A stretch of DNA of 64,000 nucleotides, from the NCBI GenBank assembly GCA_038087875.1, contig JAXLNO010001453.1, positions 62,001 to 126,000 on the forward strand. The letters run 5' to 3'. The position numbers were made by a program, and so were the translations under genes. Source of the stretch: Malacoraja senta (lineage: Eukaryota). Of this stretch, positions 1 through 28,723 are shown piece after piece (positions within the stretch are counted from its first letter, which is position 1; the number at the start of each line of letters is the position of its first letter). The notes below the pieces were generated by a model, which saw nothing but the letters and a program-made list of their open reading frames with translations, had not been told where the DNA came from and did not search any database.

Positions 1-455
1 CCGAGTGAAAAAGGTTTCCCTCATCTCCGTTCGAAATAGCCTACACCTTGTTCTTAAACTATGGCCCCTAGTTCTGGACTCTGTCAACATCGGGAACATG
101 GTTCCTGCCTCCATCGTGTCCAATCCCTTAATAATATTTTATGTTTCAATAAGATCCCCTCTCATCTTACTAAATTCCAGCGTATACAAGCCCATCCGCT
201 CGATTCTATCCACATATGACTGTCCCGCCATCCCGGGAATTAACATCGTGAACGTACGGTGCACTCCTTCAATATCTAGAGTGCCGTTCCTCAAATCTGG
301 AGACAAAAACTGCACACAATACTCCAGGGGTGGTCTCTTTAGGGCTCTGAACAACTACAGAAGGACCTCTGGCTCCTTTACTCAATTCCTCTTGTTATGA
401 TGGCCAACGTGCAATTAGCTTTCTGCACTACTCCTGTACCTGCATGCTTACTTTC
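1..455 (-). mobile_element. CR1 LINE fragment, 3' part of ORF2
   Basis: Minus ORF 139-354 contains RPPLEYCVQFLSP...RTFTMLIPGM...SY..R...GLYTLE, the typical CR1 ORF2 C-terminus. Boundaries approximate. Confidence 0.8.
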
Positions 456-759
456 AGTGAGTGATGAACAAGAACCCCCAGGTGATACCCATCACCTTCT
501 CAAGTACAAAGGTTTCCCTCCCGTTCCTGTTAAATATTTCCCCTCACACCTTTAACCTAATTCCTCTGGTTCTTGATTCTCCAACTCTGGGTAAAGGACA
601 ATGTGCATTCACGTTCTCCAATCCGCTAATGTTTTCATACACTCAGCCTCCAGCGCTCAAGAGATCAGAGATCCGCCGTGGAAACAGGCCATTCGTCCCA
701 CAGAATCCGAGCTTACCAACGATCACCAACAGTAGCACTATCCTGCAAGCTAGAGACAA

Positions 760-960
760 GGTACAATTTGCAGACGTTAAAAATAAACCATATTTCTGTA
801 CATATTTCTAGTCTGGGAGGGAACCGGAACACCCGGAGAAAACCCAGGCAGTCATCAGGAGAACTTGCAAAATCGCTACTGACAGCACCGTACTCAGGTT
901 CTAATCCGGGTGCCTGACACTGCAAGGGAGCAACTCTACCGCTACGACACGATGCCGCCT
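760..960 (-). mobile_element. HE1-type tRNA-derived SINE, degenerate
   Basis: The reverse complement resembles the SINE head and body seen in forward orientation at 14276-14570. Boundaries approximate. Confidence 0.6.
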
Positions 961-1878
961 AATTTAGTCCTACCCAGCTCAACCGATCCTTTTTGCGTAG
1001 TCGCTCGAGGGAGTATAGTAGAGCTGTGATATGGAACACCCTTCTAGTGAAGGGGTTGTCATGTTGCTGTTGTGGGGGAATTCCCAGACTATAGCGATGC
1101 AGAGAAGTAATTCAGTACCGGCTCATTGAGCAAAAACAGTAATTACTGCTTTAAGGTATTTGCATATTTGTGCAGTCGCCCACTGGGAAAGGCACCAGGC
1201 GTATTTAAAGTGTTTAATTTTACTGCCCTCACGTGACTATCCATCAAGGGCTTTACTTTAGCAGTTGCTGTAGCTACGCATCTGGTGTCCAGTGATATAT
1301 CCAGCGACTCAGATCTGGATTACTCAGCAGGGCCCAATGGCGAACTACCCATCTATATTACTGGTAATCCGCCATTTGCGGTGGTATATTTTGGTTTATA
1401 GACTTCCTATTCTTCCCGAGTCCCGGACGATTTTGCTGCTATTAGTAAAGGCCAATCACTACCTGAAATTAGAAAGTCTGTCAGGGTGTCGGTAAAGTGG
1501 AATTGGTTAACGTAATTCTGACAATTCCGGGCCAGCCCATCCTCCATCCAGTGACACCCACGGTTCTATAATTAAAACAGATAATTCTGCAGTTATTAAA
1601 CAGGTTATCCAGGACCGAGAGAAAGTGAAACAGAACAAACGTTTCAGATCTCTGGTCACATTTCCTATCCCGCTGCCAAGTGTCGTAAGAGCTCTTGTAA
1701 TTCTCTGCAGCTATTGGCTAATGATATGGAAACGGATTCCGGAGAAGCAGCTCGCAGTTGGAAACAATCAAACCACCAGGACACCTGCACAGAATGAAAG
1801 CAAACCGACAACTGAGAGAGAAGAGTAAAGCAGGCACATCCAACCGCATCAGCGGAGCAGAGAACAAGACAACGGCGA

Positions 1879-1916
1879 TGTTTTTGTAAGGGGCTTAACT
1901 TGTTCCCATCACTGTG
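1879..1916 (-). promoter_or_regulatory. Recombination signal sequence (23-class RSS, 22-bp spacer) of the TCR V segment
   Basis: On the minus strand, perfect heptamer CACAGTG (1916-1910) follows the YYCALR codons directly, then a 22-nt spacer (1909-1888), then nonamer ACAAAAACA (1887-1879; 8/9 match to ACAAAAACC). Confidence 0.95.
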
Positions 1917-2382
1917 CGCCTCAGTGCGCAGTAATAGACTGCAGAGTCGCTGAGATCCAGCCCTGAGATACTCAAACTGGTGAACTTAGTCGCTGTATTG
2001 AGCTCAATAGAGAAACGAGTATCAACGTATTGGGCCTTATATTCATATGTGTTGGTGTCTCTCAACATAGTAAACTCGAGCTGCATGCCTGGATATTGTC
2101 GGTACCATAATAAAGCATATCCACTCGATGTGGTATCATAGTTACAGGTTAAAGTCACCGCTTCTCCTTTTGTCTTCTTCGCCGAGTGCAGTGGCTGTGT
2201 GACAGATTCTCCGTGAATCGTGACTGTAAAATAAATATATTGAGATAGTAACAGACACCGGAGTCTCATGAGATTGCACTTCTCAAAACCTGAATGAGAA
2301 AGGCGAGGGGAACTGAAACATTTGATCCCGAATTACCTGTCAGAAACGCTCCCCACCCAACACAGATGCCGAGGAAACACAT
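1917..2382 (-). CDS. T-cell receptor alpha/delta-type variable gene segment (leader exon + V exon), apparently functional
   Basis: Leader exon 2382-2337 (ATG; MCFLGICVGWGAFLT+G) ends at donor AG|GTAATT. A 113-nt phase-1 intron ends at TTTTACAG. V exon 2223-1917 reads TIHG-ESVTQP...VTLTC...LLWYRQYPG...RFS...DSAVYYCALR, with the conserved Cys, Trp and Cys and no stop. RSS adjoins. Confidence 0.93.
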
Positions 2383-2744
2383 TTTACCCGTTCACTCTGT
2401 ACTAGCTGCGTTCCAAACTTGAAGCGACACAAACTGGTGCGTTTTCTCAGTCAAAGAGCGGCTGCTGGTCACCGGATGTTCGCTGTCACTGCCCTGTGCC
2501 CCCAGTGATGGAGTCAGAGATGTGGGTGGGCAGCGGGGTCTCAGCCAATTGAAATACACGTAGCCGGAATCCAGCTTTCCCCCCGAGAGTAGTCGCATCC
2601 GCTTGAATGAACCGTGGTTGAGGAAGACATATTTGTTCTTGTAACCGGTAGTGAAGGTGCGAAGCCTGAGATTGTTAAACGGAACAATAATAATGTGCAT
2701 ATTCACAAATGCAATAGATCGGGTAAACTCACAGAGTCTCTTGG

Positions 2745-3050
2745 CCAGATTAGGGGGATCGAGAAACAGAGAAAATAGATTTAAGGTCAGTGGGGAGGAA
2801 GATTTAATAGAGACCAGAAGGGTAACTTTTTTTATACAAAGGGGGCTTATGGAACGAGCTGCCGGAGGTAGTAGTTAAGGCAGGCACAATCGCAAAGTTT
2901 AAGAAGAACGTTGACATGTGCATGGATAGAACATATGTTGAGGGATAGGGGCGAAACACATGCAGGTGGGACTAGTGTAGATGGAACATGTTGGCGGTGT
3001 GGGCAAGTTGGGTCGAAAGGTGTGTTTGCGCGCTGTAAGACCCTATGATG
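2745..3050 (+). mobile_element. CR1 3' end fragment
   Basis: Contains tggaacgagctgccggagg...gaggcaggcac-like and gggactag segments that match the other CR1 3' tails in the window. Confidence 0.65.
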
Positions 3051-3071
3051 CCATGATTCTAAAAAACACAA

Positions 3072-3199
3072 CAGTATTAACGGCATCCGTCCAAAGGCGA
3101 CAGTTGTACAGTCGTTTCGGCAGTGTCGAGAAAACATCAGTGTTAACGGCATCGTCCAAAGGCGACAGTTGTACAGTCGCTTCGGTAGTGTCGAGAAAA
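3072..3199. repeat. Two-copy tandem direct repeat, period 66 bp
   Basis: cagtattaacggcatccgtccaaaggcgacagttgtacagtcgtttcggcagtgtcgagaaaa (3072-3134) recurs at 3138-3199 with a few differences. Confidence 0.9.
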
Positions 3200-3479
3200 G
3201 GGGAGTTATTACGATGTTTTGATGTTTTAATTGAGAAATGCACGTGATTTCGATATGAAGTATATTACAAGCAAAGCCAGAAGGATGTACAAGGAGACAT
3301 TTTCAATCAATGTTTCCAGTTCCACTCTCCCTTCATCTGCCATGGTTTGGCATATGAAATTCATTCCTGAGGACCTCATCACACCGAGTCCACGCCGACC
3401 ACCGATGATCAGATAACTTTCGTTCCATGTTATTTCACTTTTCCATCTATTCCTTTCACACGTGGTGTATGCTTACAGA

Positions 3480-3655
3480 CGCCAATTAACCTAAAACATC
3501 ACACCTATTTGGGATACGGGAGGAAATCAGAGCACCTGGACGATACCGACACGGTCACAGCGAGACGGGAAAACTCCACTCAGACATCACCCGAGTACAG
3601 GATTGATCTCGGGTCTCTGAAGCGTTGAGGCAGCAGCTGCGCCACTGTGCCGACA
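3480..3655 (-). mobile_element. HE1-type SINE, degenerate
   Basis: Plus strand ccaattaacc...cgggtctctg...gcgccactgtgcc is the reverse complement of the SINE head ggcacagtggcgc...cagagacccg. Confidence 0.7.
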
Positions 3656-4529
3656 AAATGTGTGAATTGTTTTTATAAAGAGTGCAGCTGGGTGATTGTT
3701 GAACTTTAACCACAGCTAGCCGGCAATATAGGTTTGGAATTTCCATGAGTTGCAGCAGTATATCGCGTGGTTTGGTGATCTGCATTCTGCGCACAGACCG
3801 CTGCTGCCTGGATTCGGTTCGTGGTCAGGGAGTATGGCGGTTTTTTTCTGTCTCCAGTGGAAACACCATTAGACCGCGCACCGTTCACTCTGTGTAGTAT
3901 CAGCGTCGCCGCCAGCACGTGAACAGTCAGCAGCTCACTAATATTTAAAATGATATACTTATGCAAAATACACAAACATTATTGCGATTATTACCATAAT
4001 CGCGACAGGTTCAGGCGGCCAGGGGTTTCAGAGTCAAATTAATATTGAGATACGCATTCAAAATATATCTCCAAAATCAAAGAAAATATAAACTAACAAG
4101 GGCCCACAAATCATCTTTTCCATTATGCTAACTATACAACGTGTTGTCAGTCGTGTAAACAAACCACTGGAGATTGGAAGATAATTCAAATGCACTCTCG
4201 CTCACTTGCTCGCGGAATGGCGTGGATATCAGGGCAGTTGTGGACGAGCAGCCATGAATTGAGAAATCGCAAGATTTGACTGGGTCTTTACATGGAAATG
4301 GTTCCGCCTTCACAGACCTCTACTATGGGAAAAACAACTGCGATTATTGTGAATTGTAGGAACAGTCATAGTGCGTCAAGGTTTTGTATTTCAATATATA
4401 TACTTTATTCGAGAAATAAATATATATAATACATGATCCTTACAAAACCCCATCCGACACTCTCGGAGGCTAAACATACATTCAATACTGTTTACACAAA
4501 TTACACAATTTTACCTCCCACCTAAGGGG

Positions 4530-4710
4530 TCACAAGTAACATTAGCAAATTTGCAGATGACACAAAGCTGGGTGGCAGTGTGAACTGTGAGGAGGATGCA
4601 ATGAGAATGACTTCGACAGGTTAGGTGAGTGGGCAGATGCGTGGCAGAAGCAATTTAATGTGGGTAAATGTGAGGCTAGCCACATAATTAATGTGAGGTT
4701 AGCCAAGTAA
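4530..4710 (+). mobile_element. CR1 reverse-transcriptase fragment
   Basis: Translates as ISKFADDTKLGGSVNCEEDA...LGEWADAWQ.QFNVGKCE, the RT catalytic FADD region. Confidence 0.8.
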
Positions 4711-4729
4711 TTCCACATCAATGTATTTT

Positions 4730-5165
4730 CAATGCATTCCGATGATTTCGCCCTAATATCTGGAATAACGTCACAAGCGGTCCCCCTGACTGTTTTATTG
4801 ATAAAAACATCGCTCAAAATATAACTATTTGATCAAGGACATTCCTTGCTGATATTTATTTCTCGTTAATTGGCACGTTATACGTTAAATTTTCTTATGA
4901 TTCTCTTCATGAAGTGCCAACAGGTGAAAGATATTAATGCCGCTGCTGTATCCAATTATATTCACTCCCACCTAGGCAGGTCCATGTGATTTACATCATT
5001 TAGACCGCTGCACAGGAACCATTCTCGTTTGTTTTGAAGAGGAGCTCCAAGCGAAATCCAGGAAAATATTATTATTGGGTACATGTCAAGTGAATTCAAC
5101 AGTGTCTGGGAAGAGCAGTAGAAAGGTAGCAAATACAATATTACATCGCAGCATGTGTTGATAAG
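4730..5165. other. Diverged older paralog of the unassigned segment found upstream of each GPCR gene
   Basis: Aligns at roughly 70% by eye with 46520-46940. Shared blocks include gccctaatatctggaataac, gatatttatttct, ttcatgaagtgccaacag and gtgatttacatcattt. Confidence 0.75.
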
Positions 5166-5179
5166 TGATCAGAAGTTCA

Positions 5180-6055
5180 TAAATGATAGGTGCAGAATTA
5201 GGCCACTAGGCCCATCAAGCCTACTTCGCCATTTAATCATGGATGATCCATCTCTCCCCCCCAACCCCATCTTCCTACCTTCTCCCCATAACCCCTGACA
5301 CTCGTACTAATCAATAATCCGTCTATCTCTGCCTTAAATATATAAATTGACGGCTTCCACAGCCTGGTGTGGCAAAGAACTCCACAGATTCACCACCCTT
5401 TAATTAAATTAATTCTTCCTCCTTCTTCCCAAAGGAACGCCATTCCATTTTGAGGCTATGGCCCATGGTCGAAGACTCTCCCTCTAGTGGAATCATCCTC
5501 TCCACGTCCACTCTATGCAAACCTTTCACAATTCGATAAGTTTCAATGTGGACCCCCATGATGCTTCCAAACTCCCGCGAATGTCGTGAAACGCTCATCA
5601 TATTTTAACCGACTCATTTGCTGGGATCGTTGTTGTAAACGTACTCTGGACCCTATCAGGAACTGGCACATCCTTCCACAGATATGGTACCCACAATTGC
5701 TCACATTACTCCAAAAGGGACCTGACCAGTGCCTGATAGTGCCTCAGTATTGCATACCTATTTTTGTATTCTTGCCCTATTGAAATAAATGCTAGCATTT
5801 CGTTTGCCTTCCTTACTACCAATTCGATTTGAAAATTACCTGGTTTGGGAATCCTGCATTAGCACTCTCAAGTCCCTTTGCACCTTCGATTTCTGGATTC
5901 TCTCCCCATTTTGGAAATGGTCTACGCTTTTATTCCTACTACCAAAATGCATGACTCCACACTTTGCTACTCAATATTCCATCTGCCACTTCTCTGCACA
6001 CTCTCCCAAACTATCCAAGTCCTTATGTAAAATCCCAGCTTTCTCTACACTACAT
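5180..6055 (-). mobile_element. CR1 LINE fragment, 3' ORF2 and tail
   Basis: Minus-strand translation gives ETYRIVKGLHRVDVERMIPL.GES.T.GHSLK, a CR1 C-terminal motif. Confidence 0.7.
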
Positions 6056-7870
6056 GTGTATGGAGCATGCTGCCGGAGGAGGTAGTTGAGGCAGGTACTG
6101 TCGCAACGTTTATGAAATATTGCTACAGGTACATGGATAAGATATGTTAAGAGGAATATGGGCCAATCGTAGGCAGGTGGGGTGTGCAGATGGGGTACGT
6201 TGGTCATCGTGGGCATGTTGGGCCGGAGGACTATTTTTCACGCTGTATGACACTAGACCTCTTTGCCAAGATCGAAGAACAACAAGTCACTTTCCTCTTG
6301 TGCAAGGCGCAAGTTTCTGCAGTTAACATCCTAGTCTTCAACTTTACTCGATCTCTCTTCCTCTTCGTTTGGAAGACAATTCGGCATATCGACGCCCGTC
6401 TTGATTATATTGCCCCTCGCGATAACGTTCAAAACTTTAAATGTCAACTCACAACATCGTTCGCTCCAGAGAAATAATAAATCCTGACCTATACAGTCTC
6501 TCTCGGAATTGAACGCCTCCAGTCCTGGCAAAATCCTTGTCATTAATAATCTGCCACTCCCCAGATTAATGGTATCATTGCTAACATATTGCGATCTGAA
6601 CAACATTGCACGTGCTGTCTCGCCAACGTCCCAGACCAGATGGTTAAACTCCACTTATACCCAACCGCGTGCGACTCCGGAAGTGAAATAAGCCCACACC
6701 TTAAGATGGCTGAGGGAAACAATATCCTACAATCCCCGTACAAGTTGACTCGCATTGCATGCAATCCGATTGCTCATGAACAAGATGGAGAAAAAGCCCT
6801 GTTTCCGTGCTGTATAACATGTAACTACCACTTACAGTGAGAGTTCGTTCAATATACCTGCCCCTCCCGTGAGGAAGACTTGGCGCTGCGTCCCCTTTAA
6901 TTTTTTACCGACTCATTTTAGACTCCTGCCCTCTTTAAAGACCTATATCAGAAGAACAAAATAAAATACCCCCACTGATCATCACCGTGTCTTATTTTAA
7001 CACCCCATAACTCCTCGGGATCTTGTGCGCTGCAGAGGGAAACATCTGCATTATCATGTCCATCTCACAATTTACAGCGTCCAATATGAGTATCATTCTT
7101 GTGCATAGAGTTGCATACTCCCCAGTTAAAATGGATCCTTAATGAATTATTTCGAAAAATAATTTCCCTCCTCCTGTGCTGTACTGCTCTGTGCCGTTTT
7201 TTTCTGTGAATTGCTTAGTATGAGTGCACAAAACATGCCACTTCTTTCTTAGGTCACGACTTTCTTCAGAATGATCTATCCCCAAACATGTACCGCCGGT
7301 CAGATTCTCTTTAACCGATTCAGTCGGCTCTATCATCTTGCACATCAACATTCTTGATATCTCCAACGGATCAATGCATTGAGATTATTTTGCCCTAATA
7401 TCTGGAATAACATCAACATCTGTTCACCTCTCGTTTTATGAATTAACACATTTCTTCAAGATAACACTGCCATAGAATGATTCCATTTTCTTTTGAAAAG
7501 GAGCTGCAAGAGGAATCCAGGATCAAACTATTAATGGGTGCATGTTACTGAATGTAACTGTGTCTGAAAAATGCATTACAAATGCTACAAATAAAACTCT
7601 ATATTACATCGCAGCATATGTGGATAAATGCTAAATGACATGTATTTTGCTGCATCTTCGTGTCACACCTTTAAATTTAAAAATAGAATGTGCAGTCGTA
7701 TCTTACATTTCCCTTGTGCGGTTGGTACTCAGCTGGTGCCTGAGTAGCGAACGATCGCATAATGAGTTTGATCGCTTTGAATCACCAGGGAGCAACCTAT
7801 TTGTTCAACGGTCCACAACGGATGTCCGCGGGGAGGTGAACGCACGCTGTCCTTCACTTTTTTCTAGGAA

Positions 7871-7878
7871 TATAAATA
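7871..7878 (+). promoter_or_regulatory. TATA box of GPCR copy 1
   Basis: TATAAATA about 80 nt upstream of ATG 7952. Conserved at 47190 in the other intact copy. Confidence 0.6.
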
Positions 7879-7951
7879 TAGCGCGGTTTGACTTCTCACT
7901 TTGTCTTCTGTAAGTTTTGAACGGCATAACTGGGTACGGCTTGACGGAGAA

Positions 7952-9806
7952 ATGGGTTGGAAGTGGTATTTGACAGCTGAATATTATTATTATCCAATTC
8001 TAGCAGCAATCGCAGTACCTGGTAGGTAAATGGAACGTGTATGCGGGACAGACTTGTGGGATGATGTGTTGATAAAGGCAATGTTAAAGGTAAAGTGCAA
8101 ATAGTGTGCGAAACACGGGAATGCTGGACTGCATCCGTCGTCTATGAATTATCGTTGATGATATTAACTGGGAGGAACTTGAAGTCCTCAACCACTTCCA
8201 CTTCAGCACCGTTGATGGTGACCGGTGATCCATCGCTTTTCCTGAAATAGATAACTTGCTCCTTCGTCTGGTTGATACTGACTTTGAGATTGTTATTATC
8301 TAGAAAGTTGTGGGAGCAGTTACAGCCGAATTTGGCCGCGGGTCGTAAGTGTTTAGGGTGAAGTGTCGGGGACGGAGCAGACATCTTTATGGGGCACCGT
8401 TGTTGAGAATTATTGTGGATGGGGTGTTATCACTGATTATCACCGATTAAGGTATGTTCATTAGAAAGTCGAGTATCCACTCGCAAGCTGGAGTGCTGAT
8501 CGCGAGGCTCGGGAGTTTATCAATGCGTTTGGATGGGAGTAGAGTTGAAGGCAAGTGTTCCAGCGGAGAAACGGGAATCTAACATTCGACTCCTTCCTGC
8601 CTGGCTGTTACAGAGAAGGGTTTAGGTCCAGGACGATGGCGTCTGATGCGGAACTGCTGCTGCAATATGCAGTCTGCGGTTCATCAAAGGCGGCTGGGAG
8701 AGGGCTCACGCTACCTGCGTATACCGCTGATAGCTAATGCGCACATCTCCTTAGCACGCACTGAGGGATTGCAAGTAGTGCAGTCGTTTTCGACCAAATA
8801 AACAAAGCGTACCAAAAATTTACCCCCACCCCAAATTAGCATCGCGTTTCCCTTCCATGTAACGACAGTTTCCTCTTTTCTACTCCCCCCAGTGAACTTG
8901 TTGGCGATTGTGATACTGTCCCGCAGAAATTGTGGTCTCTCAAAATGCACCACTCGTTACCTGGTGGCCATGGCGGCGGTGGACCTCTCAGTGATTGTCT
9001 GCGAAGTGATATTACATCGGATTGCCGACGTTTACTGGTGGCGCACATTCCTCTTCCACAATACTGTGTGCATGTGCATTATGTTCCTCGCTCCCGCGGC
9101 CGTTGCCTGTTCGGTTTGGCTCACGGTCGCTTTCACATTTGATCGCTTTGTGGCCATTTCCACTCAAAATCTGAGAACCAGATACTGCACCGAAAGAACC
9201 GCGCTGGTGGTTATAGTGACCCTAACTGCGTCCTTCTGTTTACAGAACGCTCCGTGGGCTTTTGCGTACACTTATTATCTCAGGGATCAGCAGGGTATAC
9301 TGTGGGGTTGCCGAATGCGATATCACTTTTATGTCCTGCCATCGTGGATAGCATTTTCCTGGACTCAACAGCTGCTAATCCCAGTCATTCCATTTTGTTT
9401 GATTATGCTTATGAACATGCTCACTGTCAGACGCATTTTAGTGGCCAGTCGTGTCCGCAGAAAACTCCGCGATCTCAGTAGTGAGGACCCCGAAATCGCA
9501 AACCGCAGACGGTCCGTAATTTTACTCCTAGCAATTTCCAGCTGTTTTATGCTGCTCTGGGGCACAACTGTAGCATATTTCGTTTTCTATCGATGTACGA
9601 ACGCATTTTGGTTCAGAGGGTTGAAGAACCCATTTGCAACATTTGAACAAACTGGAATTATGCTACAACTGTTGAACACCTGCACAAACACGCTCATTTA
9701 CACCGTGACCCAGAGGAGGTTCAGAGAGCAGCTGCTCCAGGTACTCATGTACCCCTTCACCCTAACTGTAAGTTTAATAAAATCGAGAAAAGCTGGTGTA
9801 AAATAA
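7952..9806 (+). CDS. Class A (rhodopsin-like) GPCR, GPR139-like chondrichthyan type, intact two-exon gene, 327 aa (copy 1)
   Basis: Exon 1 7952-8021 (MGWKWYLTAEYYYYPILAAIAVP+G) ends at donor G|GTAGGT. An 871-nt phase-1 intron ends at tactccccccAG. Exon 2 8893-9806 is open to TAA. Seven hydrophobic segments, DRF at the end of TM3, Cys at the top of TM3 and in ECL2 (WGCR), NTLIY in TM7 and an FREQL helix 8. The family label comes from recalled motif similarity, not a search. Confidence 0.9.
8130..8750 (-). mobile_element. Rex1/Babar-type LINE RT remnant inside the GPCR intron
   Basis: Minus-strand peptides LLPSKRIDKLPSLAISTPACEWILDFL and NQTKE...INGAEVEVVEDFKFL match Rex1 RT motifs. Also present at about 47450-48070 and partly at 28667-31230. 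Confidence 0.7.
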
Positions 9807-9979
9807 CATTACAATAATAATCCCTTCGTGAGTGAGTGCAAAAACTATGTAATGAAGGAGTTTTCTCTGAAATCTTTACGCATCAATTTTCAAGAAAATA
9901 GCTGAAAAATACAATCTGAACGCGTTCCCTGCATTGGAATGCACATTTGTCCATCTATTTAGCATGCGACACAATAACG

Positions 9980-10867
9980 TGGGACAAAATTAATTTTCCT
10001 TCAGTTGTTTGTGCCAGTTTTGATATCCATTGGGGTCAGTGTCCATTTGTGACGTGGCGCCACCTTCCAGAGCAATCTTTTCTGAATCTGATTTACCAAC
10101 AAACCCTCCATCCGTAGAATCCAGCCGCCACGCCTCCAAATGAATGGCAATAGCTCTACTATTCCGGTCCTCGATTCTTCCCCATCATCACACTGTTCTT
10201 CTCTGAACCCATCTCTGATTGCTCATGTAAGTACTCATTGATATAATGAGATTACAATGTACATTAAAGATTCACTCTTCACCAGTTGCATCCAACGGTA
10301 GCGGATGGTGTTTATTCAAGCAAGGGAATCTAATAATATTTTAAGGAAGCAGAGTCTAGTAGTCGGGGCGGTAAAGGGCGAAGGTTCGCTTTTCTGATTG
10401 GTCATAGTTACAAATTGGTCTGGCATGTATCTTCCAAGCCACTACCACAGCGCAGACGCTGCAGTTCTGCAGAGGCTAAGAGAGTAGAATAAAAACAAGA
10501 GGAATACGCTCGAAAGGAAGCTTCTCAGAATCGAGTGCACCTCAGGTAGGACTCCGCAGTTGGGCAGACATTGAGAAAAATGGAGAAGGCTTCCAATTAA
10601 AATGTAACTGATTACGAAGAATAAGGGATCTTTCAGCTGTTTGTGCCAGCTAAGATATTCACGAGGATCAGGGTTGATTGGTGACTTTTGTCTTGGCGGC
10701 AACTTCTGCACAAATGTTTCCATAACATAATTTACATTCCTTCATACTTTGAATGCAAGAGCAAGCCTTCAGCTCTCAATGGCAATAGGTCCACAATTCC
10801 GTTCCTCAACCGTTCCATGCCCATCACACTTTTCTTTTTGTGGCCATTTATGATTTTCTATGTAAGT
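9980..10867 (+). other. Decayed tandem exon-like modules, each ending in GTAAGT (two in this unit, three in units 2 and 3)
   Basis: Homologous blocks end at GTAAGT 10227 and 10862 (period 635). Unit 2 has them at 32679, 33529 and 34164, and unit 3 at 49529, 50380 and 51013. Confidence 0.6.
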
Positions 10868-10957
10868 GCCCAGACCACAATTCTTGATAACCTTCTTGGA
10901 GACTGCTTCTCCCACATTCGTGCAATAATATGTCTATACACACACATATATTCCATT

Positions 10958-11265
10958 TGGAGATACAGCGCGGAAACAGGCTGCTCGGCACAGCGAGTCC
11001 GCGTTGATCAGCGATTCCCGCACACTAACACCATCCTACACATTGCGGATAATTTAACATTTTTACCGAAACCAATTAACCTACAAACCGATACGTCTTT
11101 GGAGTATTCGAGGAAACCGGAGCACCGGATAAAAGCCTACGGGGAGAACGGACAACGGGTCACGCGGATAACGGACAAACTCCGTGCAGGCAACTACAGT
11201 GGTCAGGATCAAATCCGGATCTCTGACGGTTTAGGACAGCATCACTGCCTCTGCGGCACCCCTGC
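10958..11265 (-). mobile_element. HE1-type SINE
   Basis: Plus strand agatacagcgcggaaacagg...ccaattaacctacaaacc is the reverse complement of the SINE 3' half. Copies at about 34260-34567 and 51106-51415. Confidence 0.8.
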
Positions 11266-11346
11266 GGGTTTGATAGTAAACAATGTTATGGAAAGATTTT
11301 TGCGGAAGGTGATGCCAAGTGAGATGTCATAAATCAACCCTGATCA

Positions 11347-11570
11347 TACATAGTAATATATATAGTAATATATATAAATATAAATATTTTAAAAATATGT
11401 TAATACATATAAAAATAATTGTTATAATAATATATACAAATATAATAATATATACAAATAATATTAGGGAATACTATTTATTGTCATACAAACCAGACAT
11501 GGTTCGTACGAAATGTATAATTGTATATATTATTATTATATTTATTTTAATATATTTATATATATATTTA
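11347..11570. repeat. AT-rich low-complexity (TA/AAT) tract
   Basis: Almost exclusively A/T with atatat and ataata runs. Copies at about 34648-34797 (shorter) and 51497-51720. Confidence 0.85.
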
Positions 11571-12159
11571 AATGGATGGATGGAGATATTAACAGAGGAC
11601 ATCGCATCAGGCGTTAAACAGATTAAATGCTTTTGGCGGAATGTCACACATCTAGAATCGTTTTGGCACTACGAGAACGCACAGAAGGAAGAGCAGTTCT
11701 CAGCAAAGTGTGTGGAGGCTTCTCTGAACTGCTGACAAAAGTTCACTTCAAATACTTCCAGCTGACTCACGAGATGTTTTTCTCACAGAGAAGACGGAAT
11801 GTTGCTCGAAAGCAAATATCTAAATTGCTCTCTGGGTATTACTTCCCCGATTTAATCCAATCCCTGCTAGGGTTTGTTGGCAATTGCAAAACAACACACT
11901 TCCCACATTATCTTCCGTGGCCCATGGACCGACCCTTTACCCAACCTTCCATTTACTGTTCTCTCTTGAGTCCTCCCTTCATCTTTGCAATCTCTGAGTA
12001 TCGGACATAACGCTGTTCCTACAATGTACGCTCTATTCGCTAACAAAATCAACCAAAGACTTAATTTTAAACAAACAAATCACACGAGATGAGCGTTAGT
12101 GGGAATAGTAAGTTATCAGCAATGGTCTCTCCAACGTGCATCACTTTCCAATGAGGATA

Positions 12160-12835
12160 ATAGAAACATAGAAACATAGAAAATAGAAGCAGGAGGAGGC
12201 CGTTGGGCCCTTCGAGCCAGCATCGCCATTCACTGTGATCATGGCTGATCGTCCGCAATCAATAACCCGTGCCTGCCTTCGCCCCATATCCCTTGATTCC
12301 ACTAGCCCCTAGAGCTGTATCTAACTCACTCTTAAATCCATCGAGTGACTTGGCCTCCACTACCCTCTGTGGTAGGAAATCCCACAAATTCACAACTCAC
12401 TGGGTGAAAAAGTTTTTCCTCACCTCTGTCTTAAATGGCTTCCCCCTTTATTCTAAGACTGTGGCCCTTGCTTCTGGACTCGCCCAACATTGGGGACATT
12501 TTTCCTGCATCTAGCTTATCCAGTCCTATTATGATTTTATATGTTTCTATAAGCCCCCCCCTTCATGCGTCTAAACTCCAGTGAATACAAGCCTAGTCTT
12601 TTCAATCGTTCCTCATATGACAGTCCCTCCATCGCAGGGATCAATCCCGTGAACCTACGGTGCAATGCCTCAATCAGAAGGATGTCCTTCCGCAAATTAG
12701 GAGACCAAAACTGTACACAATACTCCAGATGTGGTCTCATCAGAACCCTAACGACTGCAGAAGAAACTCTTTACTCCCAGACTGAAATCCTCTTGTTATG
12801 AAGGCCAACATTCCATTATCTTTCTTGTAATTGTA
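12160..12835 (-). mobile_element. CR1 3' end with (TTTCTATG)n tail
   Basis: tagaaacatagaaacatagaaa at the left end is the reversed octamer tail. Minus ORF RPHLEYCVQFWSPNLRKDILLIE. Confidence 0.85.
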
Positions 12836-13159
12836 AACCAGCATTTTCGGTTCCTTGTTGCTGCAGATGCAACAGCTGATTTTACACCTGCTCTATTCCC
12901 ACAATTCATGCCAATTGAAATCTATGGGGAACCATACGAGGTTGGGGGCGATGAACGGGCGAGGAGAACGTCCATACATTTAATATTTCAGGTAAAGGAT
13001 TTAGGGTAGTTGATGTTGGGAGAATGGTTTCACAGTGGAGAGAAACCAGGGAGGGATTGGGATGAGGTGTGGCGGGTGGGAGGTACATGGAAACAGTCCC
13101 GTCGAGTCAACACCGCCACCGATTACCCGTCCACAACCATTTCCATGTTATCTCAGTTT

Positions 13160-13365
13160 CGCACGACTCTCCCCATACGAGAGGAAATTTTCAGAGGGCT
13201 GATCAACCTACAAACCCGCATGCCTTTAGAACGTGGGCTCAAACCGGGACACCCGGAGTTAACACCCGCGTTCTCGTGGAGATTGCCCAGCAGCACCCGA
13301 GTTCAGGATCACACACGTCTATCTGGAGCTGTCATGTAGCAGCTCTACCAGCCGCGCCACTGTGT
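13160..13365 (-). mobile_element. HE1-type SINE, degenerate
   Basis: Plus strand aacctacaaacccgc...gcagctctaccagccgcgccactgtg is the reverse complement of a SINE head and body. Confidence 0.65.
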
Positions 13366-14275
13366 ATTCCGCTAATAGTGGGCGATTTCCTTCGGCTGCT
13401 CCAGTGTCTTCCCACGAAGGATGGCGATAATCTATCTGCGATTGCCGCGTGGAAAGCAGTATCATCGGTTGGAGTTGATTGGCAGATGAAATTGAGAGAT
13501 TTGCAATAGTAAGTAACAAGAATGAGATTCGAGGGATTGCTCAGAGCCGGCTTTAATTCCTCCTGCAGGGCAAGGAAAAGATGTGAAATCCCCTAAATTT
13601 ATTTTCTCAGCCGATGACGGCTGAGATTTGTATAGCTTCAAATTTGAGTTGGGTACTCTCTCCCCAAATCCTCTTCGCTGCAGACTCTAGTTTCCCGATT
13701 ACACCATACGGCAAACACATCCTGTCATTTGGGTCTTGGGTCCTGATATTTAGTTGACAGCGATGTACATGTTGTTCAATTTGAGGAATTCGCTGGGGCT
13801 GCTGGTTTCCGCTCAAGGGTAATTTCACGGTTGTTCACAGCTCATTCTGATTTATTGGCCCCCACATCCTGCTGTAGGATCGGCCCCTCTCTCTTTCTCT
13901 CGCTCTTTCCACCTCCGTCGACCCACCCACGGCCCCTCGGTCCAAACTGCAAACAATCTTTTTTATGTTGGATTCCAGCGGATATCACACTCTCAGAAAG
14001 GAAGCGGTAAATAAACCTCGTGGCCTTCGTTCAAGCAGTCCGATGGAACGGTCTCCCTGGACATCGACATCCCAAATGTCCCATTGGCGGACAATGGACG
14101 ATAGTGATACGCCAAAGCGCCAATCTGACCATTTCAATGAAGGCGCTTATCTAAAATGGTCCCATATGGCTGTACTTGGCGCATGTTCTTCTAAATCTTA
14201 TCTAACCATTAATTAGCCCAAATGCATCTTAAGTGTTGTAACGTTGCCGACTACGACCACTTCCTTACACATATC

Positions 14276-14570
14276 GGCACAGTGGCGTAGTGGTAAAGCT
14301 ACTGCCTTGGAGCGCCAGAGACCCGGGTTCGATCCTGACTACGGCTACTTGTCTGTACTGAGTTTGTCCATTCTACCCATGACCTGCGTGTGTTTTCTTC
14401 GAGATCTTCGATTTCACCCAACACGCCAAAACAGTCGAGTATGTAGGTTACAGGTTACTTGGCTTGGTGTAAATGTAAACATTGTCACTAGGGCAGTTTT
14501 AAGTGATCACTGGTGGGTGCGGACTCGGTTAGGCGAAGGGCCAGCATCCGCGTGGTATCTCTACATTAAA
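14276..14570 (+). mobile_element. HE1-type tRNA-derived SINE
   Basis: Box A TGGCGTAGTGG (14283-14293) and box B GGTTCGATCC (14326-14335), followed by a non-tRNA body. Copies at 38178-38473 and 54430-54595 (truncated). Confidence 0.85.
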
Positions 14571-15394
14571 TATCCACCGTGAGGGAACAAATGCGCTTCA
14601 CGACGTGTTTGAATGTTTCTCCTCCCTCCTTCGGCTTATGCACTCGTTTGGAGAACCGTGCCAAATATGAAACTCTTTATCTATTCTACTCGTGATACTA
14701 TAAACCATGAAAGGTCACCTCACGAACCCGTACAGTGAAGGGATGAAGTTCTCAGATCAATCCAGTTTCGTTCTGAATCGAATCCTTCGGGTCCCGGCAA
14801 CATCCCAGTAAATATTTTCTGGACGCACTCGAAGTTAACGTCATCCTTCCTGAAGTATTGACAGAACGGTATTCGAGAATGATATTCCAAGTGCAGAAAG
14901 AAGGAACTGCAAAAGCTACTTTAAAAAAAGATACATAACATTATGTAGACATTATTGGGTCAAACAACATCTCCGGAGAAAATGCACACTGTGTTACACA
15001 TTTAATGCTGCAATCCCCTGTAAATAAAAGTCGAACCTTACACTCCTTTCACCTCCAAAACATTATCGGGAAATCCATCGAGCAACAGGGATATTTTCAC
15101 CTCTGTGGTCCTGGCGCTTTTCAGTAATCGCGACCAGATGTGAAGTCTGGTGACTTCACTTATAGCATGGATTTATATACCAAGAATGCCTTTCTTCTGC
15201 CGTAACCAACAGATAATAGTTGGCTATGGTTTTGGAACTAGTCATTCTTCTTAGTGCTGAAAATGCATGCTATTTATTAATATCAGCCGCCGAGCTAGCC
15301 TCAAATGTATCTGAAATAGAGACGTTTACCTTTTCTCCATGGTAGGTGTCCTTGTTGCCGTGATTCAGAGGCCACGTGATTTCGTGGCAATTGT

Positions 15395-17402
15395 TTTTTT
15401 TTTATTTTTTTTTTTTTTATTTATTTTTAATTTTTTCTTACGAAGACCCTATAAGAGCGAAATTAAAAACAAAAAGAAAAAGAGTTAAGAAATAGACCCT
15501 AAGAAAAGAAAAGAGAAAGAGAAAAAAAGAGAAACAAATGTTTTTTTGAGCAATACGTAAATAGGACATACCAACTCTTCAACTATCATCCCCCCTTACC
15601 TGACCTCAATTTTTTATTTTTTTAAAGTACTTTTGCACCCTATGTTTGTAATAATTCTATAAATGCAGACCACGTCAGGTGGAAGTGATCTGGTTTACCT
15701 GCTAGGAGGAGTCTTATCTCTTCTAGGTGTAATGTTTCAAACATATTTGAAATCCACATATTTATAGTTGGTATTGGAGCCTTCTTCCAAAATTTTAGAA
15801 TTAGCTTTTTTCCAGTTATTAACCCATAGTCCATTAATTTCTTTTGAAACACATTTAGTTCTGGATCATCTTCCGTTATTCCGAAGATAATCCATTCTGC
15901 TTTGGGTATCAGTCTTGTTTTAAATAACTTTGTAAAGATTTCAAAAATTTCATTCCAAAATTTTTGAATTTTTGTACAGAAGACAAATGAGTGCGCTATA
16001 GTTGCTTCTTGGGATTGACATTTATCACAAATAGATGATACGTTTGGGAAAATTTTATGAATTTTAGTTTTCGAATAATATAATCTATGTAAAATTTTAA
16101 ATTGTATTAAAGTGTGTCTTACATTAATCGAGCATTTATGCACGTTTAATAAGTATTCATTCCAACTTTCCTTTGAAATTTTAATAGCTAACTCTTGTTC
16201 CCAGTCTCTTCTGATACCCTCCGTAGGTGGTATTTGTACATTTAAAATAATATTATACAAATATGATATTAAGTTTGCTGATTCCGCTTTTATCTGCATT
16301 GCCTCGTCCAATACATCTACTGGGTTATTATAATGATCTTTTGTATATTTTTTCAAATAGTCGCATATTTGAAAATATTTAAAATATTGATTATTTCCGA
16401 GTTTATATTTTATTTGTAATTGTTGAAATGAAAGTAATTTTCCAGTTTCATACAAGTCACCAAGCGTTTTAATTCCTAGTCTATCCCATTGTGTATAAGC
16501 TTTATCTATAATAGAAGGATTAAACGAAGGGTTATTGACTATAGGTAATAAAAGTGATAAGTTTCTTAATTTTAAATTTTGTTTTATTTGTTTCCAAATA
16601 CGGATTGTACTATGAATAATTGGGTTCTTATTATAGTTTATGTTATTCAGTTTCATTGGAGAGAGGAGGATCGCTCCAATGTTTCTAGAGGAGCAATCCT
16701 CTTTCTCCATTACAATCCAGTCTACTTGTTGGGCGGAGTTATCCATCAGTTGAAACATGTTTTTAATATTTACTGACCAATAATAATACATAAAATTAGG
16801 TAGTGCTAGACCCCCCAATACTTTAGGTTTATTCAGATGGGTTTTTTGTATTCTATGTGATTTATAGTCCCATATAAAATTAGTGATATCTGAGTCGAGT
16901 TTTTTAAAAACTTCTTAGGTAAGTATATAGGAATTGATTGAAATAGGTATAAAATTTGTGGTAAAAAGATCATTTTTATTGCGTTTATTCGGCCTATTAA
17001 AGACATCGGGAGCGTTTTCCAGAATTTAATTAGTGTATTTAGTTTATTAAGTAGGGGGTCAAAATTTGCCCTGAACATACCTTGATATGTTCTGGTAATT
17101 TCGATTCCCAAATATTTAAATTTTTCTGTAGCTATTTTAAAAGGGAATTTTAAAAGATGTGTTGAATCTTTCGGTTTTATTGACATAATTTCACTTTTAT
17201 TCCAATTTATTCTATATCCAGAAAAAGATCCGAAGTTTTCAATTAAATTTAATATATTTGGTATAGTGATTTGAGGTTTTGTAATATACAATAATATATC
17301 ATCCGCGTATAAAGATATTTTATTATATGAGTCTTTAGTATTATATCCATGAATATCAGGGTGTATTCTAATTTTTTCTGAGCAAACAGCTGTGGTGATA
17401 AG
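15395..17402 (-). mobile_element. L1-clade LINE, 5'-truncated (RT C-terminal half + Cys-rich C-terminus), unit 1 only
   Basis: Minus ORFs 16833-17429 (KISLYADDILLY) and 15640-16818 (CDKC...H.F.FC) are separated by a 1-nt frameshift near 16905. A poly(A) tail appears as a T-tract from about 15395. Nearly identical to the copy at 28724-30942. Confidence 0.92.
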
Positions 17403-18132
17403 GAGAACTTTAAAATCTTTCCCCTGCACGGGAGACCCGACCTTTTCTTTGTCGGGTCTCCGTTGTCGTTGGGGCTGGGCAACGTGGAGCGGCCTCCACC
17501 AGGAACGACCTGGGGCTCCAGTTGCGGAGCTGCGGACTACTCACCGTCACGGGGCTGGCCGAGTCCGGAGCGGGTGGAGATGTGGTGGAGACAATCGCTG
17601 CTGCGACCCGACCCCCGGAAATTCGGAGGCTACAACCGCGGGTCTGGCGGACAGGAACACAGGAAGCCCGCGAGTCCCTGGGGGGAGACCGCTTTTCGGG
17701 GCTTCCGCAGCGGCGACTTCTCCCGCCCGAGTTGCGGGGTTGAAGAGCACCTGGAGCGGGGCTTTACATCGTCGCCCCGCGCGGCTTGGAGTGGTCGCGG
17801 TCCTTTGCGATCGCGCGCCGGGGCTCTAACACCAAGACCCGGTGCGCGACCTTGCATTAACCGGCGTGGCTTTAATGGCCGCGTGATAATCACCATCGCC
17901 CGCCGGGGGCTTTGACTTTGACTCTGACATCGGGGGGGGAGGGGGAGTGCAGTGGTGAGATACGTTGTTTTGCCTTCCATCACAGCGCTGTGATGGATGT
18001 ATGTGTAAATTGTGTTGTGTTTCGGGTCTTCTTCGTTTTGTAATGTATGGCTGCAGAAACGATATTTCGTTTGGACCTCAACGGGGTCCAAATGACAAAT
18101 TTGTCCAAATGACAAATAAAATAATAATAATA
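17403..18132 (+). mobile_element. Non-autonomous GC-rich retroelement with hairpin + (TAA)n tail, 5'-truncated copy
   Basis: Matches 55541-56281. 3' stem-loop TTTGGACC-7nt-GGTCCAAA at 18070-18092, then ATGACAAAT (duplicated), AAA and (TAA)n. Confidence 0.8.
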
Positions 18133-18480
18133 ATCTGAAGACGAGTGGTCGAGACATAGGATGGCATGTCCATGCGCGTCGATTGGCTCTGTCTGCAAAC
18201 TTTGTTAAGCGTGGGCAAAGTTAGGGTAAGGGCTTGCCTCCGTAGTCTATAACTCAATAAGCAAAGATTAGAGTTCTGCTGGAAATTAATTCAAACCACG
18301 CAGCCACGTTCTGCACGCTCTCTATCTGTTGTCCCTCAGAACTCTGTCATACCATGCCCAGCTGTTGATCAGAACAAACATGCGACATCTTGCTCGCATT
18401 GCGTTGTGCGTGACATTCGTTATTGGTAACAACGTTTATTTTTTAAAGTTTTCATGTCCTTCAAGAGAGAATTGCAAATC

Positions 18481-19312
18481 TGTAGATTGATGACGCATGT
18501 GAACCAATCACACTTAGCCAGCATCACTAACTCCACCCCACTATAACACTTATTCTAGGGCCTATTCCCAGCACCGTCAGTCTGAGCAGCTAGGATGAAC
18601 TGACTACACCTTGTCTTTAAATGCTGCCAAGTTACAGTGCTGATTATATATGTGTTTAAATCATATACTCTCAGGTGTCTGTCTACATGGTGTCAGAAGT
18701 GGCATTAATCCCAAAGAACTGAACACTGCCATTAAGCGCCCACACCATCCCACGAAGACAGTAGAGAATGTTGCGGCAAAGATCGGAACGGTCACCCTAT
18801 TTTCTGTCCGAGATGCAAAGAAACGGTCATACGACAGATCCAGCAGACCACTCCAGCCTCTACTGCCGGGCCAGGTCGTCCGTCTATGAACTTCAACTGG
18901 ACATTGTCGTCTGGGCTCTGTTGTACGCCCGACTGATGAGCCGCGATCGTACCTTGTGGACTGTGAGGGAGCGGTATACCGGAGAAGTCGACAACACCTG
19001 CTTGCTGTGAAGGAGCCCCGACCACCGCCTGCTGATCCCTATGCTCCACCGCTCCAATTCCAGCCGCATTTCGCAATGTCTCACGCCCGTGGCCGCATGC
19101 CTTGCACCCCCCCCTCCCACGTCCCTCGATCTCCACTAACCACGGGGTTACACATACCGCATGTTTCCCCTCTCGGTCACCACAAGCCTCTCCCGTGCGA
19201 TTTTCACCTTCAACCTCTCCGCCTAATCCTTCAGTGGAGGGAGGGGATGGTTGGGTCTGATGCTGACTAAAGATGTGTTTAAATTATATACTGTCTCAGG
19301 TGTCTGTCTACA
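18481..19312 (+). mobile_element. Miniature internally deleted Gypsy-type LTR retrotransposon (832 bp)
   Basis: 5-bp TSD AAATC (18476-18480 and 19313-19317). Termini TGTAGA...TCTACA. 5' LTR 18481-18687. PBS TGGTGTCAGAAGTGGCATT at 18688. Integrase C-terminal remnant KRSYDRSSRPLQPLLPGQVVRL...PRSYLV...YRRSRQHL. PPT GGAGGGAGGGGA at 19236-19247. Short 3' LTR 19248-19312. Confidence 0.88.
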
Positions 19313-19332
19313 AAATCGAAGCGGTCGGGTTA

Positions 19333-19505
19333 AACATAGAAACATAGAAACATAGAAAATATGTGCAGGAATAGGCCATTCTGCCCTTCGAGCCTACAAC
19401 GCCATTCAATATGATCATGGCTGATCATCCAACTCAGTATCCTGTACCTGCTTTCTCTCCATACCCCCTGATCTCATTAGCCACAAGGGCCACATCTAAA
19501 TCCCT
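19333..19505 (-). mobile_element. Short CR1 3'-tail fragment
   Basis: (AAACATAG)3 followed by gcaggaataggccattctgcccttcgagcc, the reverse of the CR1 3' UTR. Copies at about 40731 and 57482. Confidence 0.75.
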
Positions 19506-20119
19506 CTAACTAAATGTTGTGGCCTAGCATAACAGGTCCACAAATCAAGGAGGCACAAGGGAAGATACAAAACAACATACACAAGGTATGCGTAGTCCTT
19601 GCCATCAGTAAATGTCGTTTGGGATGTAAATGGCCATCGGGATGTTCCCGTTTTCAGTATTAGAGATACAGCACAGAAACAGGCCCTTCGGCCCACCAAC
19701 TTCACGTTGACCAGCGATCCCCGTACACTAACACTATGCTACACATTGGACACTTTAGTTTCATTCTTGGAACACAGATTCTTGGATTCATGGAACACAT
19801 CGCAGAACAGCGTATATTGACGTCGCAACACGTCTCATGCTTCCAGAAACCCACTGCACCGACGAGGTCCTCTCTCCAGCAGCCGGTCTCCTTACCGGCC
19901 CTATGTCGGCCTCCTCCCATTGTGGGCGGGCGAACCGGGACTTCCGGCTGAGTTCCCGCGCGAGCCGCTTGTTCTCCGTCCTCGGTCTGCGGCGGGCGAA
20001 CCAGGCATACCGGGCTGGTCCTCAGTTATTGGCGATTGAGGTCTGGCCTAGCCAGCGATACTCTGTCCGTGTTGAGCTGCCTACTGCTGGGTGTGGCCGT
20101 GGCTAGATCACATCTGGCC

Positions 20120-20280
20120 GCGCTTTGGCCACATTCGAGACACATGCAGGTTTACCGTTTAATTGGTCTCTATAATTGTTCCTGTGTGCAGGAGAGAGGC
20201 TGTGTGCGGGTACTTGCTGGTCGGCGTGGACGCGATGGAGCGAAGGGACTGTTTTCACTCTGTAAACTAAACTAAAGAAA
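20120..20280 (+). mobile_element. HE1-type SINE 3' half with (AAACT)n tail, joined to a GC-rich 5' segment
   Basis: gcaggtttaccgtttaattgg...gctggtcggcgtggac...gaagggactgttttcactctgtaaactaaactaaa. Copies at about 41520-41680 and 58270-58430. Confidence 0.65.
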
Positions 20281-22189
20281 ACTCAAGCAATGTCTTATAG
20301 TTCACTCTATAATTCGCTCTCTTCAGAAACGGCACGAAGTTAGATTGTTTTCCTTTCAATGCTACATTATCGTGTAACTGAAATGTAACTAGCAGATGAA
20401 AGTGTTTTCACCGGAAGTAAAGATAATGAAATGTTTCTGGCTTCTTCTTCGCATTTCTTTATTCTTCCAAGTACTTTTTAGATATAGAGAATAAAAGATG
20501 AAAAAACTATTTTGTTATTAACATAAATCCTATTAAATCGTACACAAAAATATCAGCGAGATTGATTCGAATTGATCGGAGAGCACCTTGGTTCGCATTG
20601 AATAATTAAAATTGTTGAAACAGAATCTCTTGTTTGTTTCATATTGCTCATGTTGACAGTTGTTCAAAGAAGAAGAAAGATTCACCTGGTTAACTTGGTC
20701 AACACATTCCTATGTATTCATAATTTGAGTGTTTAGTAATAAATTGATCTTTGGCTAAATCGACTAAACCTGTTGTTTTTATTCCTGTCTTGAAAGAAGT
20801 TGCGCAACTTCTGGGGGCAGATAAATCTTCGGTAACCCGTCATGGTCAATGTGTATCTGCAACATCAGAGGTGCAGCTGTAGAAACGCTGCAGAATATGA
20901 CAGTGCCCCAATGCCTTATTTCATCGAATCTGCTTTTTAACATTTGGACCGAACTCTCTCTTGAGTACATTAATTTAATTTTATTGCTAATATTATGCAA
21001 ACTCCGGTCAGTCACCAATCAAATACACTTTACTGATTGCACCTGGCGAATTCTATTTTGAAGAAAAATAAACAGCCTTTATCATTAACCTTCTTTTTCG
21101 CCTTCTAACTGCTGCTTTTCCGCTGGAGATTTCTTTTATATTCTGTGCAATTGTACATGTTCAGTATCTGCGGTATTTTGTATTTTATTAAACTACGCCA
21201 TATTGCAGCTGGTCCAAATTCGGCGCACCTTCTGCTGCATATGCCATACATGCAGGGTACAGCCATTGCCTAAAAATTAAAAAAAATACTTCGTTTAACA
21301 GCAGGCACAATCACTGTTCATAATCACTGCACCTCTTCGGACTTCCTGTGGCCATTGCGAAAATAATACCAAACTTCCTAAACCTGGACCAGACTCTGTC
21401 TGTTTTGGAACGTTGAAAATATTTTGTAGCGTGCTATCCAGTCAGCAGAAAGACAATACTTGATTGTAATGGAGCCATTTGTAGTATTATAGATACATGA
21501 TAATGGCACAACGTTTAATGCAAGGTGAAGCCAGCATAGCCCAATCATACATAGTGCTAGGGTCAGCATTTAGGTAGATCAGTTGAGGAACAGATTTTTA
21601 GTCACAATGTCTGTGTCGACCTGATACCAAGAGCAGCTCGGATCTACCTGCGCGTTACCGATATCCCTCCATTCCCTGCAGATTCATATCTCCATCCAAA
21701 TCTATTTTAAATTCCACTATCGTATCCGCCTTAACCATCAGCCCTGGCAGCGCCTTACATGCACTCGCCACACTTTGTGTAAAACATTGCGCCGCACATG
21801 TTCGTTAAATTTTGCCATTCGTACCATAAAGCTGTGACCTCTTGTATATAATGTTTTCCATTCTGGGAAAATCAAAGTTCCGCCGGTCTACCGGGTCTCA
21901 TAAGTTTACATAACTCGACCAGGTCTCCCCGCAATCTCCGACGTTCCAGAGGGATAAAAATCCAAATATGACCAATCTCTCCCTGTACCTAATACCCGCC
22001 AATCCAGCCACCGTGCGCAACTGGACAACTGCGGCTGTGTAACACGCTGTTCTTATTACGTTTCCCCATCTTGCTGAATTGACAAAGTCATTCACTAATG
22101 GCTTTGCTGCCGGTCACCAGTTTCTGCAGCGTGCTAGTTTAGTTAGTTTACATTAGTTTGGTGTAGTTAAAGTAAACTAAACAAATACA

Positions 22190-28660: not shown

Positions 28661-28723
28661 AACATATGTTATCACTAATTCTCACTGATTAAGGTATGTT
28701 CATTAGAAAGTCGTGTATCCAAT

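Follow-up and report, generated by a model that had tools for sequence, protein, structure and literature searches.

A probable T-cell receptor alpha/delta-type V segment beside a tandem array of GPR139-like receptor genes in the skate Malacoraja senta

In mammals, olfactory receptor (OR) genes lie among the distal variable (V) segments of the T-cell receptor (TCR) alpha locus, the TRAV genes: OR10G2 and OR4E2 in human, Olfr1507-1509 in mouse (PMC4574546). Here we describe a skate locus with a similar combination of genes. It is found in a 64,000-nucleotide stretch of Malacoraja senta DNA (contig JAXLNO010001453.1, positions 62,001 to 126,000; the whole stretch is called the window below), which carries a complete germline TCR V segment on the minus strand and, in divergent orientation, a tandem array of genes for G-protein-coupled receptors (GPCRs) that resemble GPR139.

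A first-pass annotation of this DNA had drawn the analogy to the ORs of the mammalian TRA/TRD locus, and the analogy is apt. In both cases, intact class A GPCR genes that are unrelated to antigen receptors lie between germline V segments of (in skates, probable) TCR alpha/delta type, and the arrangement is conserved between related species, as it is in mammals (PMC4574546). The two differ in that the skate GPCR family is not an OR family. They also differ in numbers: mammals have two to three ORs, placed at the locus edge, whereas in the skate the GPCR genes seem to be locally at least as numerous as the V segments and are themselves under amplification. There is no support for a common origin of the two arrangements. 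Mammals already provide an example of GPCR genes within a TCR V array; what is new is that a different, locally abundant and actively duplicating family occupies such a position in skates. A search of open-access and bioRxiv literature returned neither a description of GPR139-like GPCRs interleaved with TCR V segments nor a paper on this GPCR family.

We consider it likely that a V segment of usable type sits here in a region where V segments and GPCR genes are interspersed by birth and death, with the GPCRs as passengers. The two would be unrelated multigene families that both grow by local tandem duplication, in a region of the batoid genome where alpha/delta-type V segments are interspersed with chondrichthyan-specific GPR139-like GPCR genes. 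Their head-to-head geometry would go back to the ancestor shared with the little skate, as a by-product of duplication history. On the 5' side of the V, a GPCR-only unit would then have been amplified at least three times after the split from the little-skate lineage, with one copy decaying. The GPCRs would be passenger genes in the same sense as the ORs among the distal mammalian TRAV genes.

The V segment and its little-skate orthologue

The V segment occupies positions 1879-2382 with an open reading frame. A short leader exon is separated by an intron from a V exon that continues in frame, and the translated domain shows the Cys...WYRQ...YYC hallmarks of the V-set fold (Pfam V-set, 7.7e-14). 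The V exon is directly abutted by the heptamer of a recombination signal sequence (RSS) of the 23 class (CACAGTG, 22 nt, ACAAAAACA), which is conserved in the little skate. The segment is thus intact in its leader, its V exon and its RSS, as the first-pass annotation had claimed for a minus-strand V starting at 2382. The split leader, the V-set domain with its Cys/Trp/Cys, the end of framework region 3 (FR3) in YYCAL, the RSS class and the closest clusters are those of vertebrate TRAV/TRDV segments. It differs from these in its spacer of 22 rather than 23 nt, and its nearest annotated relative (a chimaera Ig-like protein) is only 48% identical.

Three kinds of similarity bear on the class of the V. 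In the ESM Atlas, its top cluster is named 'T-cell receptor alpha/delta variable' (0.97); in the PDB, the best single-domain matches are a TRA chain and Vdelta1; and the one database relative that bears a name is a TCR alpha V region. For the PDB search we used single-domain rows alone, since multi-domain single-chain antibody fragments (scFvs) were top-ranked as their scores add up. The segment is therefore likely of alpha/delta type, an assignment that stays short of formal proof because it comes from these three similarities and not from a V-class tree with labelled sequences. Taken with its intact structure, it is probably a germline, usable segment.

The same annotation had found no further V in the window, and 48 diverse V-domain queries indeed matched positions 1898-2269 alone. 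Pattern scans of the entire 64 kb gave no other canonical RSS and, for FGxG, no J-like FGxGT motif. An Rfam search of the whole window returned no match.

The orthologous locus of the little skate (L001, contig JAMYXN010000269.1) shows how the V is placed. Window positions 1033-6287 are colinear with L001 15098-20275 at 87–90% identity, with both flanks running into GPCR units, and window positions 23-858 correspond to the sequence that immediately follows the first GPCR on L001. The order on L001 is V, GPCR, V, GPCR, such that one GPCR is flanked on both sides by RSS-bearing V segments (Table 1). The little-skate orthologue stands between two GPCRs, and past one of them comes another RSS-bearing V; the window V is therefore embedded in the GPCR array and not terminal. 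Two alternatives had been proposed earlier: that this V is the most distal of its locus, which does not fit the little-skate order, and that the array interrupts the locus, which does.

The little-skate V is intact, with the same splice sites, identical heptamer and nonamer, and one spacer change. The two proteins share 84.7% of their amino acids, and the replacements are concentrated in complementarity-determining region (CDR) 1 (TSSGYA vs TWTAYT) and CDR2. Between V and GPCR, the spacer is 87% identical overall; its best-conserved blocks are the RSS/FR3 region (95%) and the 200–400 bp upstream of the V start codon (93–96.5%), the latter as would be expected of a working V promoter.

In the window, the start codons of the V (2382) and of the first GPCR (7952) are 5,570 bp apart and divergent, which bears out the distance of about 5.6 kb given in the first-pass annotation; the little-skate spacer measures ~7.5 kb. 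V(D)J joining by deletion removes the DNA between the positions of the joined segments. The V points to lower coordinates, so that its own deletional joining would spare the GPCR array. If a V of the same orientation lying further up were joined, the T cell concerned would lose the array from the chromosome on which this happened. If the region is a working TCR alpha/delta V array, GPCR genes would be cut from the genome in many T cells, and their presence would have to be reckoned with when elasmobranch TCR loci are annotated.

Several observations weigh against a usable V in such an interspersed region. Neither the window nor any of the comparison loci shows a D, J or C segment, and for this reason the membership of the V in a working TRA/TRD locus, like its linkage to D-J-C and its use by T cells, is something that we infer. 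The window itself holds one V only, which means that interleaving at this locus rests on little-skate orthology. Between the two orthologues, omega is 0.71 over the whole V, with 28 substitutions only and hence as a weak test of selection. Finally, one point in favour depends on a presumed identity. A V/GPCR pair in the sawfish (described below; L003) is found at 54.18 Mb of CM019866.1, a chromosome of 57.8 Mb, a position that fits the published TCR delta but would be 1.4 Mb from it only if this chromosome is Chr12. On Chr12, TCR delta is found at 55.60 Mb and clusters of IgM genes at 54.04-55.45 Mb (published table, PMC10751288 supplement).

It is possible that the V is an orphon, an intact copy that left the TCR locus for a GPCR cluster, lies too far from D-J-C to be joined and has not yet decayed. 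The absence of D, J and C from the window and from L001 would agree with this, as would the unplaced 170-kb scaffold on which the little-skate locus lies, the spread of the GPCR family over many chromosomes and the frameshift in a neighbouring V of the thorny skate. However, V, RSS and promoter block are intact in two skate genera (dS ~0.11-0.16), with changes concentrated in the CDRs. Several different RSS-bearing V segments, all in the same orientation, stand among the little-skate GPCRs, and the sawfish pair is probably 1.4 Mb from TCR delta, given the presumed chromosome identity. We therefore regard an orphon as unlikely, and a V region interspersed with GPCR genes as the better account.

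The receptor genes and their amplification

The first GPCR gene (copy 1) consists of two exons joined by a phase-1 intron (8022-8892, acceptor ...CCCCCCAG/ at 8892), and the program-made table of open reading frames (ORFs) lists only the second of them (8892-9806). The spliced product has 327 aa and begins with MGWKWYLTAEYYYYPILAAIAVPVNLLAIVILS, an N-terminal layout that matches a thorny-skate protein (P0003). It is a class A receptor (Pfam 7tm_1, 8.7e-14, profile positions 2-260 of 260).

An orphan-type receptor distinct from the ORs had been proposed from the sequence, and the comparisons agree. All of the best 120 relatives come from elasmobranchs or chimaeras and bear the automatic name 'probable GPR139', among them little-skate (82–85% identity) and thorny-skate (65%) sequences. 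We considered an olfactory receptor and rejected it, as OR51E2 matches with an E value of 0.21 over 95 residues and the best 120 relatives are GPR139-like throughout. The family is large (988 matches in a database search; 95 clusters at 50% identity with E<1e-30 in an exhaustive search). Past these clusters, identity falls to ~28–30%, with GPR139-annotated proteins of coelacanth, salamanders, teleosts and amphioxus. Its genes are spread over many chromosomes.

Among solved structures, human GPR139 is the best match (E 3.9e-4), barely ahead of the CCK-B and TRH receptors. The skate protein aligns to GPR139 from transmembrane helix (TM) 1 to helix 8 and has several motifs in common with it: ILS...YL.A.AA.D in TM1-2, W.TV..T.DR(F/Y).A in TM3, LLNT..N...Y without Pro at the NPxxY position, and RFR in helix 8. 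GPR139 and GPR142 are orphan/aromatic amino-acid class A receptors; the window gene differs from them in coming from a large expansion with species-specific clades, and is not a single-copy orthologue of neuropeptide type. A maximum-likelihood tree places the window copies beside a little-skate and another skate sequence and then with a thorny-skate pair, inside a batoid clade (support 100/99) that is nested among species-specific shark expansions. This pattern is typical of birth and death. The data fit a chondrichthyan expansion that is distantly allied to GPR139, as a distant sister clade rather than as an orthologue. Because classical ORs are very few in cartilaginous fish, this family, which runs to hundreds of genes in sharks, rays and chimaeras, is a candidate for a role in sensory reception or nutrient sensing. 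A Logan contig (SRR13269359) that is 90% identical to the GPCR was considered as a sign of expression. It reads through the intron and is thus genomic or unspliced, and uninformative on this point.

From ~6077 onward, the window is a tandem segmental duplication with units of 17–21 kb that are 95–98% identical in self-BLAST and carry one GPCR gene each. The array of at least 58 kb that the first-pass annotation had described is real, but it amounts to three GPCR genes in three-and-a-bit units, and one of the genes is a pseudogene. Copies 1 and 3 are intact. They share 94.7% of their amino acids (dS 0.043, omega 0.59), and since dS to the little skate is 0.16, the duplications are young. Omega is 0.46-0.59 overall and 0.46-0.51 against the little skate. 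These values of about 0.5 fit a selection on the intact genes that is purifying but relaxed, which would suit a fast-evolving receptor family. The window offers a clean comparison between orthologues, together with an amplification of GPCRs alone that can be dated (dS 0.04 between copies, 0.16 between genera).

The insertion in unit 2 contains a young long interspersed nuclear element (LINE) with extended reverse transcriptase and endonuclease ORFs at 25789-27919 on the minus strand (RVT_1 4e-36, Exo_endo_phos_2 2.6e-08), and at 28813-30750 an inverted copy of the LINE fragment found in unit 1. This fragment (15440-17380) is a LINE 3' end with a zf-RVT match and is 96% identical to the LINE in unit 2. 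The insertions point to recent retrotransposition after the duplications.

In a repetitive region with units as similar as these, one has to ask whether the juxtaposition of V and GPCR is a false join or the tandem copies are haplotypes placed in a row. The unit-specific LINE insertions and indels, together with three lesions in copy 2, indicate that the units are separate loci and not stacked haplotypes. The units differ by 2–5%, carry their own LINE insertions, a 177-bp deletion and those lesions, which exceeds haplotype differences, and an independent assembly of another genus runs from the same V flank into the same GPCR 5' region. An assembly artefact is thus extremely unlikely.

Table 1. 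Positions of the features in the window and in the orthologous little-skate locus L001 (a slash marks an exon boundary or, in the rows on inverted repeats, separates the two arms)
Feature	Position	Strand	Remarks
RSS of V	1916-1879	-	heptamer CACAGTG 1916-1910; 22-nt spacer 1909-1888; nonamer ACAAAAACA 1887-1879; 23-RSS class
V exon	2223-1917	-	307 nt; acceptor TTTTACAG/; ends ...DSAVYYCALR
V leader intron	2336-2224	-	113 nt; GT...AG boundaries, conserved in little skate
V leader exon	2382-2337	-	46 nt; ATG at 2382; donor G/GTAATT; spliced frame MCFLGICVGWGAFLTV/TIHGE...
Probable V promoter and 5' untranslated region	2385-2784	-	93-96.5% identity to little skate vs 87% overall; putative function
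440-bp element	4729-5164		paralogue (74%) of an element that precedes each GPCR exon 1 by ~330-760 bp
Duplication unit 1	6077-23911	+	self-BLAST 95-98% to units 2 and 3; own LINE fragment 15440-17380
GPCR copy 1 exon 1	7952-8021	+	23 codons + 1 nt; ATG 7952; donor G/GTAGGT
GPCR copy 1 exon 2	8893-9806	+	runs to stop; intact 327-aa receptor
Inverted-repeat arms, unit 1	22262-22969/23126-23821
Duplication unit 2	23911-45363	+	~5.4-kb insertion at ~25521-30943 in place of GPCR exon 1 region
GPCR copy 2 exon 2, pseudogene	31371-32283	+	without exon 1; splice acceptor AG>CG; 1-nt deletion near 31714
Inverted-repeat arms, unit 2	43633-44342/44499-45204
Duplication unit 3	45363-62217	+	self-BLAST
GPCR copy 3 exon 1	47271-47340	+	identical to copy 1 exon 1
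GPCR copy 3 exon 2	48210-49123	+	intact
Inverted-repeat arms, unit 3	60500-61207/61363-62059
Fourth duplication unit, start	62217-64000	+	matches 23911-25694 at 98.1%; leaves window
L001 V2	1708-2013	-	23-RSS
L001 first GPCR	exon 1 8123; exon 2 9924-10837	+	between V2 and V orthologue
L001 V orthologue	15955-16440	-	intact; 23-class RSS
L001 second GPCR exon 1	23956	+	beyond V orthologue

Other cartilaginous fishes and the question of shared regulation

V segments within 10 kb of the GPCR's closest relatives were also found in other batoids. In the sawfish locus, a GPCR on the plus strand is followed 9.4 kb downstream by an intact V on the minus strand with a 23-RSS (CACACTG-23-GCAAAAACC). In one thorny-skate locus (L007), a frameshifted V pseudogene with a heptamer lies 5 kb downstream of a GPCR on the same strand, while no V lies within 10 kb of the GPCR in a second thorny-skate locus (L002). 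The same is true of three sevengill-shark loci whose GPCRs fall in the subclade of the window genes. Among the loci compared (skates, sawfish and sevengill shark), V/GPCR linkage was thus seen in batoids only. An old linkage between receptor clusters and TCR genes, one option in the first-pass annotation, is not supported, given the three shark loci and the spread of the family over many chromosomes, and neither is homology to the mammalian OR/TRAV arrangement.

Some further features of these loci are worth recording. Downstream of the sawfish V, three successive 23-spacer RSS-like signals stand within 190 bp (L003 20111-20298, minus strand), with the heptamers CACACTG, CACAATG and CACAGCG and a good nonamer each. 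Thorny skate L007 (1-1502) and a little-skate locus (L009, 1-1594) contain genes with two V-set matches each, unlike a rearranging TCR V. They sit 8–9 kb from GPR139-like genes, so other genes of the immunoglobulin superfamily also occur in these clusters. In one of the sevengill-shark loci (L006, 1170-3693), a zona-pellucida-domain gene adjoins the GPR139-like gene.

The recurrence of the divergent orientation in M. senta, little skate and sawfish raises the question whether the adjacency is functional, with common regulatory elements or chromatin, GPCRs that are switched on in the T lineage or silenced together with it, or GPCR promoters that organise the V array. A 440-bp element deserves attention in this respect. 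It is present upstream of every GPCR exon 1 and again 2.3–2.8 kb upstream of the V; self-BLAST matches it at 25055-25493, 46508-46944 and 63361-63799. It occupies the same three positions in the little skate, and a sub-block of the copy near the V (window positions 4964-5163) is 96% conserved. The element upstream of GPCR copy 1 itself carries the 177-bp deletion mentioned above. A search between V and array revealed no relic of a GPCR exon 1; the 440-bp upstream element is all that is in common, and the copy near the V may be the remnant of a promoter or a local repeat.

Other observations speak against a functional adjacency. At 5.6 kb and ~7.5 kb, the start codons are too far apart for a bidirectional promoter, which we thus rejected. 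The GPCR unit was duplicated three times without the V, the neighbouring V of the thorny skate is dead and on the same strand as its GPCR, and no V lies within 10 kb of the GPCR's nearest relatives in sharks. A functional coupling of V and GPCR is very unlikely on this evidence, and the two gene families seem to be uncoupled. Interspersion by birth and death, with the GPCRs as passengers, would make the locus a tidy finding on genome organisation, a cohabitation of V and GPCR genes without demonstrated functional consequence.

One can go further and imagine the batoid TCR alpha/delta V region as a nursery of a lineage-specific receptor family, with GPCRs that are somatically deleted in T cells and perhaps regulated by the locus, for example through stochastic one-gene-at-a-time expression borrowed from antigen-receptor chromatin. 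In a weaker form, a chondrichthyan chemosensory family would have come to its TCR V position in parallel to the OR/TRAV linkage by mechanism and not by chance. We mention this scenario as a speculation to which we would give very little credence.

Repeats and unassigned reading frames

At the end of every duplication unit stands a large inverted repeat, whose arms of ~700 bp are ~87% identical and ~160 bp apart (Table 1). The same structure occurs in little skate L001 at ~4135-5223 and 20787-21906. One candidate identity is a foldback element, another a palindrome that promotes tandem duplication.

Three long ORFs of the window have no Pfam match: 10688-11332 and 33990-34634 (214 aa each), which are copies of one part of the duplication unit, and 29007-29711 (234 aa). 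All three are probably repeat-derived.

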